Shown: positions 28,514 to 44,488, counted from the stretch's first letter. The stretch: 55,774 nt of DNA from Macrostomum lignano (GCA_002269645.1 NIVC01002243.1:1-55774); one strand, 5' to 3'. The notes: generated by a model not told the origin, from the sequence alone. Program-made: numbers and translations.

Positions 28514-29675
28514 AAATCCCAGCTAGCCAGACTTCACCTACTGTTACAAAATGTTATTAGGTAGTTTTTACACGAGCTCATTATTTTTACTACGTCATTT
28601 TATGACTGGCCGCTTCCGGTGCCTAAAATGAGCCATGGATTTTTGAGTAAGTCGAGTAGGTCTGCTCATGTTGCTCTGGTGTCATAAAAAATTAAATATA
28701 CACTTTTTGTTGCTTACTGCTGCTAAATGATTTGCCCGTGTAAATGAGTATTTGAAAACCTGAGTAAATTGCAATTAAACCCTTGAATGTATTAATCAAT
28801 GTGCGGGTCTGCAGACTAAATGCTAATCAATTAAATAATGTTGAACACGAAACGCCAAACAGATTATAAGTACTCGTATTTGCCCGAACTAATTAAATCC
28901 AGTACAAAATTAATCTCAGTGTAGGGAATACTTTATTAAATTATATTTCAGTCAACAATACAGTTACAGTACATGGTTAGCAACTAGAAATAATCTGATT
29001 GAGTCCCACAGTTCAAAGGCCAGCGATCATGGGCGGTGTCCGGTCCGTGTCCGAGGTCAGTGGGTGCAGCGGAGCACCTGCCTACAGTCTACCTACTTGC
29101 CTAGCGGCAGGTGGCGGTAGATCCTGTAGGCCCTGCTGGCAACGCGGAGCACCCTCCTCCACCTGATGCGGATGCGGCGAAGGAGCCACTTCTTCTGCAG
29201 CTCGGCGGCCCTCTCGTCCGTCATCTCCGGCTCGTCCATGTCGGCCAGAGCCTCCAGCGCCGCCATCGCCTCCGCGTCCTCTTGGCTGTTCTCCTGGCTG
29301 TTGGGTCTGGCGGCGGCCAGGGCTGCGCACAGCAGGAGTCCGAGAACAAACTGCCACCTCATGATGAAGAAGTTAAGAGCTGTAGCCTGATGAAGCTGAG
29401 AAGCTGGTAGAGTTATCTAGCCTTGGCTGCTTGGTTGTCCGCTAAGCATCCAAGGGCCCTGTATTTATAGTGTAGAAATCAGCACGTTTTTCCGGTCGTT
29501 GGAATGCCAAGGGCTCCGCTGTGTCCCCTTCACGTGCTGCCGTCTTTTCTTGGATGGTTAGACCCTTACAGTATGTCTTAGCCATCTTTTAGCTTTATTG
29601 TCCATTTGTCCACTCATTGCCAAGGCTCTGAGGGCATTGAACTTGAATACTACTGCATTTGAATTGAATTTGTTG
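28514..29675. repeat. Inverted segmental duplication, about 1.16 kb (partner 33634-34794), containing the peptide gene
   Basis: Reverse complement matches from caacaaattcaattc through the promoter, CDS and 3' flank to gctagctgggattt, with only a few differences seen. Confidence 0.92.
29093..29362 (-). CDS. Prepro cationic peptide, copy 1 (putative antimicrobial peptide precursor, 89 aa)
   Basis: Signal peptide MRWQFVLGLLLCAALAAA, acidic pro-piece, KK, WLLRRIRIRWRRVLRVASRAYRIYRHLPL, GK*. TATAAATA at 29469-29462 and AATAAA at 28937-28932. Confidence 0.85.
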   Translation of the reverse strand: MRWQFVLGLLLCAALAAARPNSQENSQEDAEAMAALEALADMDEPEMTDERAAELQKKWLLRRIRIRWRRVLRVASRAYRIYRHLPLGK

Positions 29676-30261
29676 GCCTGCCCGCCTGCATGCAATGTGT
29701 TATAGAAAGCACACTGAGCTTCTCAAGTAGTTTGAGAACAATAGCTAAAGGTTTGAGTCGCTAAAATTGTGTATTCCATTTTATAGAAGCCTAAAAGTTG
29801 AGTTTGAGATTGGAGAGGGCTGTCTGGACACCTCAGGTCGAGTTCAAGTTCGCTGCTTTGAGATAACGATTTGGCTGAACAAGCATGTTGTGCATCACTG
29901 CTGACAAGATGTTTGATTGTGATCGGCAGCTGATTCACTTCACCAATGAAGTTTTTTTCTTTGAACATCTAAAACGCATTTGTCTTTTCATTTGAAGTTT
30001 CTGCTGTTCGTAGTACACACTGCAGAAATAAGTACAATAGTTCATGTTACGAGCAACTTATCCTTATCAATTTTTTAAATGATATGATGCTTTCTAGGTC
30101 CTACATTTAATTAACTTCTACGTGTAATTTTGAGTTCTGCATGCAATAATTTTTTAAGAATCTGGAAAATAACGTTTCTGTCAATAATTTTAACTTGTCC
30201 TATACTCAACAACTATTAAAGACTCACGAAGCTTGCTTGGCTCTAGTGTTTTCTCGGGTAT

Positions 30262-31529
30262 CATGCTGAGATGCCTTATGCTCAGATGCCATATGCTCAG
30301 ATGCCATATGCTCAGATGCCATATGCTCAGATCCCATATGCTCAGATGCCATATGCTCAGATCCTATTTGCTCAGATGCCATATGCTCAGATCCTATTTG
30401 CTCAGATGCCATATGCTCAGATGCCATATGCTCAGATGCCATATGCTCAGATCCTATTTGCTCAGATGCCATATGCTCAGATCCTATTTGCTCAGATGCC
30501 ATATGCTCAGATCCTATTTGCTCAGATGCCATATGCTCAGATGCCATATGCTCAGATCCTATTTGCTCAGATGCCATATGCTCAGATCCTATTTGCTCAG
30601 ATGCCATATGCTCAGATCCTATTTGCTCAGATGCCATATGCTCAGATGCCATATGCTCAGATGCCATATGCTCAGATCCTATTTGCTCAGATGCCATATG
30701 CTCAGATCCTATTTGCTCAGATGCCATATGCTCAGATGCCATATGCTCAGATGCCATTTGCTCAGATCCTATTTGCTCAGATGCCATATGCTCAGATCCT
30801 ATTTGCTCAGATGCCATATGCTCAGATCCTATTTGCTCAGATGCCATATGCTCAGATCCTATTTGCTCAGATGCCATATGCTCAGATGCCATATGCTCAG
30901 ATGCCATATGCTCAGATGCCATATGCTCAGATCCTATTTGCTCAGATGCCATATGCTCAGATGCCATATGCTCAGATCCATATGCTCAGATGCCATATGC
31001 TCAGATGCCATATGCTCAGATGCCATATGCTCAGATCCTATTTGCTCAGATGCCATATGCTCAGATGCCATATGCTCAGATCCTATTTGCTCAGATGCCA
31101 TATGCTCAGATGCCATATGCTCAGATGCCATATGCTCAGGTATACCATATGCTCAGATACCATATACTCTGATGCCATATGCTCAGATCCTATTTGCTCA
31201 GATGCCATATGCTCAGATGCCATATGCTCAGATGCCATATGCTCAGATGCCATATGCTCGATGCCATATGCTTAGATGCCATATGCTCAGATCCTATTTG
31301 CTCAGATGCCATATACTCAGATGCCATATGCTCAGATGCCATATGCTCAGATGCCATATGCTCAGATGCCATATGCTCAGATGCCATATGCTCAGATGCC
31401 ATATGCTCAGATGCCATATGCTCAGATGCCATATGCTCAGATGCCATATGCTCAGATGCCATATGCTCAGATGCCATATGCTCAGATGCCATATGCTCAG
31501 ATGCCATATGCTCAGATGCCATATGCTCA
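30262..31529. repeat. 15-bp minisatellite with two variants (inverted partner at 42171-43319)
   Basis: Units ATGCCATATGCTCAG and ATCCTATTTGCTCAG interspersed. Confidence 0.97.
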
Positions 31530-44000: not shown

Positions 44001-44218
44001 TAAGACATACTGTAAGGGTCTAACCATCCAAGAAAAGACGGCAGCACGTGAAGGGGACACAGCGGAGCCCTCGGCATTCCAGCGACCGGAAAAACGTGCT
44101 GATTTCTACACTATAAATACAGGGCCCTTGGATGCCCAGCAGACAACCAAGCAGCCAAGGCTAGATAACTCTACCAGCTTCTCAGCTTCATCAGGCTACA
44201 GCTCTTAACTTCTTCATC

Positions 44219-44488
44219 ATGAGGTGGCAGTTTGTTCTCGGACTCCTGCTGTGCGCAGCTCTGGCCGCCGCCAGACCCAACAGCCAGGAGAACAGCCAAG
44301 AGGACGCGGAGGCGATGGCGGCGCTGGAGGCTCTGGCCGACATGGACGAGCCGGAGATGACGGACGAGAAGGCCGCCGAGCTGCAGAAGAAGTGGCTCCT
44401 TCGCCGCATCCGCATCAGGTGGAGGAGGGTGCTCCGCGTTGCCAGCAGGGTCTACAGGATCTACCGCTACCTGCCGATAGGCAAGTAG
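44219..44488 (+). CDS. Prepro cationic peptide, copy 3 (variant ending ..RVYRIYRYLPIGK)
   Basis: Five nucleotide differences from copy 2 (1 synonymous, 4 non-synonymous). TATAAATA at 44112-44119 and AATAAA at 44644-44649. Confidence 0.85.
   Translation: MRWQFVLGLLLCAALAAARPNSQENSQEDAEAMAALEALADMDEPEMTDEKAAELQKKWLLRRIRIRWRRVLRVASRVYRIYRYLPIGK

Follow-up and report, generated by a model that had tools for sequence, protein, structure and literature searches.

A tandemly expanding family of predicted charge-masked, arginine-rich secreted peptides in the flatworm Macrostomum lignano

The window analysed here is the entire contig NIVC01002243.1 of the flatworm Macrostomum lignano (55,774 nucleotides), placed by exact look-up of an 89-residue protein that it encodes. 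It carries three copies of a single-exon gene whose products belong to an undescribed family, which we propose to be specific to the M. lignano lineage and expanding in tandem. The products are small precursors in which a hydrophobic, signal-like segment and an acidic propiece precede an arginine-rich C-terminal part. Judging from the sequence, the chances appear to be about even that the window genes encode masked, secreted, amidated and membrane-active peptides of host defence, with an antimicrobial or cytolytic action.

The three open reading frames (ORFs) are each 89 codons long and consist of a single exon (Table 1). Copies 1 and 2 encode the same protein, from which copy 3 differs at four residues (R50K, A78V, H84Y and L87I). 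Residues 1–18 of the precursor are hydrophobic and signal-like, with a mean Kyte-Doolittle value of 2.65 over residues 5–18 and with Ala at positions -3 and -1, directly before R19-P20; the call of a signal peptide is based on this hydropathy and on the Ala-X-Ala pattern. Residues 19–56 form a 38-residue acidic propiece, K57-K58 come next, and residues 59–87 make up a 29-mer with ten Arg, two Trp and no Asp, Glu or Cys, which is followed by G88-K89-stop. The net charge in the window copies is -10 for the propiece and +10 for the mature part. This layout had been drawn in a first-pass annotation of the same DNA and was found to be correct residue by residue. The genes had also been described there as intronless, and this holds: the ORF is unbroken in the window and, for a close paralogue (C1, see below), the 364-nt length of an in situ probe equals the genomic distance from primer to primer, indicating that the transcript is unspliced.

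The family is considerably larger than the three copies to which the first-pass annotation had confined it. A profile search of proteins clustered at 90% identity gave 23 clusters, so that at least this number exists, distributed over dozens of loci and with mature peptides of 6 to 34 residues. An exhaustive HMMER scan with the family profile over 1.84 billion representative proteins returned ten representatives. All members but one are M. lignano entries named ‘hypothetical protein’, carrying at least 21 different transcript-cluster identifiers. The sole exception is a 929-bp genomic contig (Logan) from run SRR31628392 with a family member at 541–813; its mature part is a Pro/Arg repeat (FLRVRLPRVRMPRVRLPRVRLPRLRVRFRW; FLRVRLPRVRMPRVRLPRVRLPRLRVRFRWSKK) that lacks the terminal Gly, and its sequence suggests that the family extends beyond the DV1 reference assembly. 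Five further copies were found by tblastn within 27 kb of contig NIVC01001664.1, of which two are broken, one by a frameshift in the signal and the other by loss of the start codon together with a stop and a frameshift. Genes for short forms are likewise arrayed, one stretch of 16 kb holding five of them and another of 3 kb two; all have a single exon and a TATA-like box some 90–105 nt upstream. The arrays of the family hold two to five copies each and lie on many contigs; together with the broken copies they form, as read from the sequence, a pattern of birth-and-death evolution. Members are also hidden in composite gene models. The GenBank model Mlig001477.g4 (139 residues; NIVC01001664.1 10001–37330) is a mis-merger in which the start of one family copy is joined to a second copy 27 kb away, and a 634-residue UniProt ‘Sushi domain-containing protein’ is a mis-merged model whose C-terminus consists of a propiece and mature peptide of the family.

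Searches by phmmer and hmmsearch of 5.8 billion clustered and 1.84 billion representative proteins found no homologue outside Macrostomum-type sequences. A search of PDB sequences gave nothing relevant, and Pfam searches with seven members gave sub-threshold or borderline matches only; a Lock_Gag1-like match (27.1 bits, member P0018) was rejected as spurious, as it stems from the acidic helix being duplicated within that protein. The family was not recognised at first reading, and the database searches made here recovered only uncharacterised M. lignano proteins and the one anonymous contig. In the literature searched, with a single-cell atlas among the topics, we found no description of the family, of its gene identifiers or of any Macrostomum antimicrobial peptide (AMP), and the supplements of Grudniewska 2018, Mouton 2018 and a 2025 intestine paper contained nothing useful on the family.

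The design of the precursor is shared by every member: the signal, of the form M(K/R)WQ(L/F)(A/V)LGLLLCAALA, is followed by the acidic propiece, by Lys-Lys or, in rare cases, one Lys, and by a cationic end piece of the variable length given above. The long forms resemble the window 29-mer; there are also an 18-mer, FRIRIRWGRVARNVLRLL, and the Pro/Arg repeat form, while the many short forms include FVRVRVRL, IFRVRVHI, IFRVRVRI, IFRVHVRF, WLRVRARVRI, FVRVHVRF and FIHIHF. Pairwise identity among the paralogues falls from 97% in the signal to 82% in the propiece and 55% in the mature part. The proportion of nonsynonymous differences (pN) rises in the same order, from 0.015 through 0.089 to 0.202, and so does its summed ratio to that of synonymous differences (pN/pS; 0.18, 0.36 and 0.62). 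Since the ORF has been maintained in more than 20 diverged paralogues, all indels are in-frame and pN/pS is below 1, the genes can be regarded as coding and constrained.

The charge of the propiece is closely matched to that of the mature part, with Spearman coefficients of -0.90 (n = 22) and -0.87 (12 representatives), values that are uncorrected for the kinship of the paralogues. As far as can be judged from sequence, such matching fits an intramolecular mask on a cytotoxic cation. The mature parts contain a total of 133 Arg, 15 Lys and only two acidic residues; with a cleavage site made of Lys and a product based on Arg, a Lys-directed cut would spare the product. Before the stop codon, 19 of the 22 members end in G, GK or GKR. 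Because this ending is conserved over very different lengths, the predicted amidation is argued to be functional; cleavage at KK and amidation of the C-terminus are both predictions.

The mature part of all long paralogues is amphipathic in two different registers. Calculated over windows of 11 residues, the hydrophobic moment reaches about 1.0 in both halves, at 170° in the N-terminal and at 100° in the C-terminal one, and the moment of the whole peptide at 100° is raised compared with shuffled sequences (z = 2.2, p = 0.025). The alternating RIRIR start, followed by a helix-type spacing of Arg, had been singled out on first inspection as unusual; it is both real and conserved, appearing as strand-type and then helix-type moments. 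The AlphaFold2 model features a helix at residues 49–83 with a predicted local distance difference test (pLDDT) score of about 74, and a separate helix in the propiece; the alignment was shallow and the overall mean pLDDT of 63 is low.

The DNA of the three window copies aligns from about -310 (counted from the ATG) to about +190 (past the stop), with 98–100% identity. Upstream of each copy lies a 40-nt block, GGAAAAACGTGCTGATTTCTACACTATAAATACAGGGCCC, which contains the element GGAAAAACGTG and the TATA box TATAAATA, the latter 107 nt before the ATG in all three; a 33-nt block with AATAAA is found 155 nt past each stop. Each of the two blocks occurs three times in the window, compared with zero occurrences expected by chance. 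The TATA box and AATAAA reported earlier at matching positions of each copy are thus parts of identical blocks, at -107 and +155 respectively. The element GGAAAAAYGTG is located 24 nt upstream of the TATA box, with fixed spacing, in all genes of the long subfamily and is absent from the promoters of the short subfamily; the contig from SRR31628392 also bears it, in two copies. From its sequence and spacing it is a candidate cis-regulatory site.

Lack of expression had been named at the outset as a finding that would speak against functional peptide genes; transcripts of the family do exist. The GenBank gene models of the assembly come from a genome-guided assembly of RNA sequencing (RNA-seq) data, from which weakly supported novel transcripts were dropped (PMC5730564), and this annotation includes the genes of the window. 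The family as such has been shown to be transcribed; for the window copies, transcription is supported by this RNA-seq-based annotation. A probe for in situ hybridisation to RNA815_1838.3 (transcript of 501 nt, probe of 364 nt) appears in Table S11 of Brand et al. 2020, where it is assigned to Mlig001477.g4 and given the score ‘gonads’, with Ramm et al. 2019 named as the source. Both primers match the close paralogue C1 exactly, 364 bp apart (NIVC01001664.1 9977–10340). The work of Ramm and colleagues is said to have been a study of socially sensitive transcripts. In the positional RNA-seq data of Arbore et al. 2015, RNA815_1838.3 has 93, 94, 49 and 176 reads in samples A–D, with log2 levels of -11.5, -11.6, -12.6 and -11.0, and is assigned to class [0,0,0] (PMC4490696). 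Sample A is the head only, without gonads (PMC4490696); because it stands at an equal relative level, RNA815_1838.3, or paralogues that cross-map with it, is present throughout the body.

In design, the closest known system is that of the amphibian preprodermaseptins, whose highly conserved signal and acidic spacer are followed, past a basic site for cleavage, by a cationic peptide that is hypervariable and often extended by Gly for amidation. In both systems one prepro cassette serves many paralogues with mature peptides that look unrelated. However, the searches described above found no sequence similarity of the flatworm family to the frog precursors, its site is KK or K in place of the frog KR, its peptides are based on Arg and not on Lys, and its genes have a single exon whereas those of the frog carry an intron. 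As the organism is a flatworm, the resemblance is best seen as convergent. Stretches in which Arg alternates with hydrophobic residues are also found in the Arg-rich β-hairpin AMPs arenicin and tachyplesin and in the Pro/Arg-rich AMPs PR-39 and Bac5. The window peptides share the alternation with the first two, although they lack the stabilising disulfides and are not homologous, and FLRVRLPRVRMPRVRLPRVRLPRLRVRFRW has the Pro/Arg-repeat look of the others.

The motifs also resemble peptides designed by chemists. The lactoferricin derivatives LF11-322 (PFWRIRIRR-NH2) and R-DIM-P-LF11-322 (PFWRIRIRR-P-RRIRIRWFP-NH2) perturb anionic membranes (PMC6347193), and the window peptide shares with R-DIM-P-LF11-322 the heptad RRIRIRW, the Arg/Trp/Ile chemistry and a high positive charge, its own amidation being predicted. 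These derivatives are synthetic, 9–19 residues long and unrelated by descent, and they serve as a functional lead, not as evidence. The designed, β-sheet-forming 8-mer IK8L (IRIKIRIK), which is broadly bactericidal (PMC4330034), has the same (hydrophobic-basic)n register and the same length as IFRVRVRI, FVRVRVRL and IFRVRVHI of the family; it differs in being synthetic and in mixing Arg with Lys, and its likeness to the natural short forms is one of sequence alone.

In the mechanism that we propose, each intronless gene would be transcribed, under its own TATA promoter, to yield an mRNA of about 0.5 kb, and the 18-residue signal peptide predicted from the sequence would direct the product into the secretory pathway. 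The helical acidic propiece, with its charge of -10, would neutralise the Arg-rich C-terminal piece (+10) and render it harmless inside the producing cell, as is suggested by the charge compensation throughout the family. An endoprotease may then cut after the conserved Lys or Lys-Lys, to which the conservation of K-K points. The conserved G or G-K would allow a carboxypeptidase to trim the terminal Lys and the PHM/PAL enzymes, which are known in flatworms, to turn the Gly into an amide. This would release WLLRRIRIRWRRVLRVASRAYRIYRHLPL-NH2 or, should cleavage extend to the conserved RR pairs, shorter pieces. The predicted monoisotopic masses are 3842.350 for the amidated 29-mer of copies 1 and 2, 3896.386 for that of copy 3, 2081.249 and 2135.284 for the 17-mer amides that cutting at RR would give, and 1042.688 for FVRVRVRL-NH2. 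The released product would bind to anionic membranes through Arg and Trp, probably with a strand-type alternation in its N-terminal part and an amphipathic helix in its C-terminal part. The site of action may be the gametes and eggs, the body surface or both.

Several observations weigh against a host-defence function or against details of this scheme. Within the mature part, the ratio of nonsynonymous to synonymous rates (dN/dS) mostly lies under 1 and positive selection is therefore not demonstrated, and the charge correlation described above includes the shared ancestry of the paralogues. The read counts of the window copies cannot be separated from those of their paralogues. The sole tissue label, ‘gonads’, for a socially sensitive transcript, points to a reproductive role over general immunity, and it conflicts with the body-wide RNA-seq class [0,0,0]. 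A KK followed by Trp or Phe is a non-classical convertase site, and the long forms retain two internal RR pairs (WLL-RR-IRIRW-RR-V...) that are better convertase sites than KK. In view of these conserved pairs the 29-mer is perhaps not the final product, and a 17-mer amide is possible. Finally, the short members predicted to be amidated, some of them as RF-, RL- or RI-amides, are as neuropeptide-like as they are AMP-like.

It is conceivable, if unlikely, that the genes encode precursors of neuropeptides or peptide hormones, in which convertases cut at KK and at the internal RR pairs, amidation follows, and short peptides such as VLRVASRAYRIYRHLPL-NH2, FVRVRVRL-NH2 and IFRVHVRF-NH2 act on receptors. 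The standard grammar of a prohormone comprises a signal peptide, a basic site for cleavage and a C-terminal Gly, and the flatworm npp, FLP and I/L-amide precursors have the same signal peptide, basic flanks, terminal Gly and short hydrophobic/Arg ends (I-, L- or F-amide). The short forms of the family, at 6–10 residues, end as RF-, RL-, RI- or HI-amides, and FVR(V/I/L) is loosely like the flatworm I/L-amide GFVRIamide (name from PMC13026224). Body-wide RNA-seq of class [0,0,0] is common to a neuronal pc2 homologue (PMC4490696), and schistosome gonads transcribe genes for neuropeptide precursors (PMC4976352). However, the pattern of conservation is reversed: the predicted bioactive end, of 6–34 residues, is the least conserved part at 55%, while the signal and propiece are nearly fixed. 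In neuropeptide precursors the conserved part is the bioactive peptide. The C-terminal residues of the family vary freely (L, I, F, P, C, H), which is a poor fit to a conserved receptor; dozens of recent tandem paralogues with pseudogenes would be unusual; the tracking of peptide charge by the propiece has no role in signalling peptides; and the label given in situ was ‘gonads’ instead of brain or nerve cords. A hypervariable mature region of up to 34 residues, a charge-matched propiece and massive tandem expansion likewise distinguish the family from the flatworm neuropeptide precursors. A defence peptide is favoured over a neuropeptide because of the divergence gradient, the charge compensation, the amphipathicity and the motif match to designed AMPs.

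It is rather improbable that the peptides are secreted products specific to reproduction, made in or near the testes and ovaries, directed at gametes, eggs or the mating partner (for instance in gamete interaction, the egg coat or sexual conflict) and with no primary immune role, whose divergence would be due to sexual selection. The ‘gonads’ score of the C1 probe (RNA815_1838.3), attributed to a study of socially sensitive transcripts, is in favour of this explanation, and reproduction-related genes evolve fast in Macrostomum (PMC7336406); a fast-evolving mature region and tandem expansion would fit as well. On the other hand, the head-only fragment has the same relative RNA-seq level in the absence of gonads (class [0,0,0]), and an amphipathic, Arg/Trp-rich and charge-masked design is that of membrane-active peptides, so that the explanation overlaps with AMPs that protect gonads or eggs. 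Such AMPs are known in insects. The ceratotoxins of Ceratitis and the andropin of Drosophila are small, linear, cationic peptides of clustered paralogues, made in reproductive tissue and responding to mating or social state rather than to infection. If the gonad label holds, a likeness to these would bring the ‘gonads’ and socially sensitive labels into line with an antimicrobial design. They are not homologous to the flatworm family, however, being Lys/Ala-rich helices, and the flatworm transcript is not restricted to gonads in RNA-seq. A bolder extension of the host-defence proposal, which we consider distinctly doubtful, is that one conserved prepro cassette has evolved natural versions of the chemists’ designs, namely the (hydrophobic-Arg)n amidated octamers, the RIRIRW Arg/Trp type and the Pro/Arg repeat, and that these are perhaps deployed in or around the gonads according to social or mating state, as an egg- or gamete-protecting or a partner-directed secretion. 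In the same speculative vein, the short alternating forms might work as self-assembled β-sheet material instead of as soluble peptides.

An offensive, deterrent or digestive cytolytic secretion, given off by the gut or by glands of the pharyngeal, epidermal or rhabdite type and aimed at diatom prey or at predators, would share the membrane-active design of a defence peptide but is very unlikely. Body-wide expression takes in the head fragment with its pharynx and glands, and of the four transcripts of class [0,0,0] that Arbore et al. tested, two were specific to the gut (PMC4490696). The reported label of the transcript, however, is ‘gonads’ and neither gland nor gut. We know of no venom or toxin apparatus in M. 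lignano, which feeds on diatoms.

It is scarcely credible that the genes encode protamine-like nuclear basic proteins of germ cells, or are spurious ORFs in repeated DNA: an Arg content of 33–44% in the C-terminal part, the ‘gonads’ label and the setting of minisatellites and inverted duplications could be cited in support, but the sequences have a hydrophobic signal with Ala-X-Ala, Arg that alternates with hydrophobic residues and forms no runs, a conserved C-terminal Gly(-Lys), ORFs that persist across more than 20 diverged paralogues, where pN/pS is less than 1 and indels stay in frame, and transcripts of matching length, the signal peptide and Gly-Lys end being the grounds on which the protamine-like reading was rejected.

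Table 1. Positions of the three peptide genes, their control blocks and neighbouring features in the 55,774-nt window.
Feature	Position	Strand	Remarks
Copy 1, coding sequence (CDS), 89 codons + stop	29093..29362	-	ORF listing; annotated gene in GenBank record
Copy 1, signal	29362-29309	-	
Copy 1, acidic propiece	29308-29195	-	
Copy 1, KK	29194-29189	-	
Copy 1, cationic 29-mer	29188-29102	-	
Copy 1, Gly-Lys	29101-29096	-	
Copy 1, stop	29095-29093	-	
Copy 1, promoter block	29454..29493	-	GGAAAAACGTG 29493-29483; TATAAATA 29469-29462
Copy 1, poly(A) signal block	28914..28946	-	AATAAA 28937-28932
Copy 2, CDS	33947..34216	+	protein identical to copy 1; ORF listing; GenBank-annotated
Copy 2, signal	33947-34000	+	
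Copy 2, propiece	34001-34114	+	
Copy 2, KK	34115-34120	+	
Copy 2, 29-mer	34121-34207	+	
Copy 2, Gly-Lys	34208-34213	+	
Copy 2, stop	34214-34216	+	
Copy 2, promoter block	33816..33855	+	GGAAAAACGTG 33816-33826; TATAAATA 33840-33847
Copy 2, poly(A) signal block	34363..34395	+	AATAAA 34372-34377
Copy 3, CDS	44219..44488	+	four residues unlike copies 1 and 2; twin on NIVC01002536.1
Copy 3, mature part WLLRRIRIRWRRVLRVASRVYRIYRYLPI	44393-44479	+	
Copy 3, Gly-Lys	44480-44485	+	
Copy 3, promoter block	44088..44127	+	GGAAAAACGTG-type element 44088-44098; TATAAATA 44112-44119
Copy 3, poly(A) signal block	44635..44667	+	AATAAA 44644-44649
Inverted repeat, left arm	28736..29675		contains copy 1
Inverted repeat, right arm	33634-34573		contains copy 2
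Copy 1 upstream region with 15-bp and 31-bp minisatellites	29780..32332		inverted repeat of it upstream of copy 3, 41368-43801
Palindrome arms	44793-49046 / 49116-53370		
Mitochondrial-carrier gene	35766-39398	-	Mito_carr exons 39183-39398, 35969-36328, 35766-36017
32-bp minisatellite between carrier exons	36331-37641, 38413-38859		
Giant multi-exon gene	6484-27016	-	VWD 25071-25712; VWA within 9592-11373; PAN 6484-7626
Mini- and microsatellites	5911-6266, 20955-22174, 26066-26792, 30263-31529, 31990-32360, 32386-33249, 35038-35652, 41369-41710, 42172-43318		

The copies in the window are related by duplications of different extent. Copies 1 and 2 each lie in one arm of an inverted repeat of 940 nt, the arms of which are 100% identical. 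Copy 3 aligns with copy 1 over 698 nt at 98%, and in addition over about 3 kb of upstream sequence that includes the minisatellites; the homology stops about 21 nt beyond the block of the poly(A) signal. Copy 3, with 13.5 kb around it, is also present at the start of contig NIVC01002536.1, at 99.8% identity. Some 125 nt beyond the poly(A) region of copy 3 begins a near-perfect palindrome with a 69-nt spacer and four blocks of 99–100% identity, which is present on NIVC01002536.1 too; it could be genuine or an assembly artefact of a missed adapter in long reads.

Between copies 2 and 3 lies a mitochondrial-carrier gene, the inter-exon stretches of which are mostly 32-bp minisatellite. Mini- and microsatellites are unusually dense in the window, with periods of 4, 53, 30, 15, 31, 21, 32, 31 and 15 bp, and they give rise to spurious long ORFs in several frames. 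A scan of positions 28000–45500 against Rfam gave no match. The giant multi-exon gene encodes, besides its VWD, VWA and PAN domains, about 4,200 residues of repeats with 26.8% Lys+Arg, 9.3% Cys and 3.8% Asp+Glu, which recall the K/R-rich adhesive proteins of M. lignano. The repeat epitopes of Mlig-ap1 and of Mlig-ap2, which are two such proteins, and their home scaffolds, scaf1170 and scaf3366, have been published (PMC6410801); an identity of the giant gene with either was rejected, as none of the four published epitope peptides occurs in any frame of the window.

A common description of the family would improve the annotation of more than 20 ‘hypothetical proteins’ and of several mis-merged models, and the family is a clear case of co-evolution between a propiece and the charge of its peptide. 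Host-defence peptides are almost undescribed in free-living flatworms, and M. lignano is amenable to transgenesis and RNA interference. If the peptides are active, they would provide a natural series of amidated Arg peptides that are very short (6 to 34 residues), free of Cys and made under one precursor design, and that could serve as a structure-activity set. If the ‘gonads’ and socially sensitive signals hold, effectors of an immunity type would be linked to reproduction in a simultaneous hermaphrodite.

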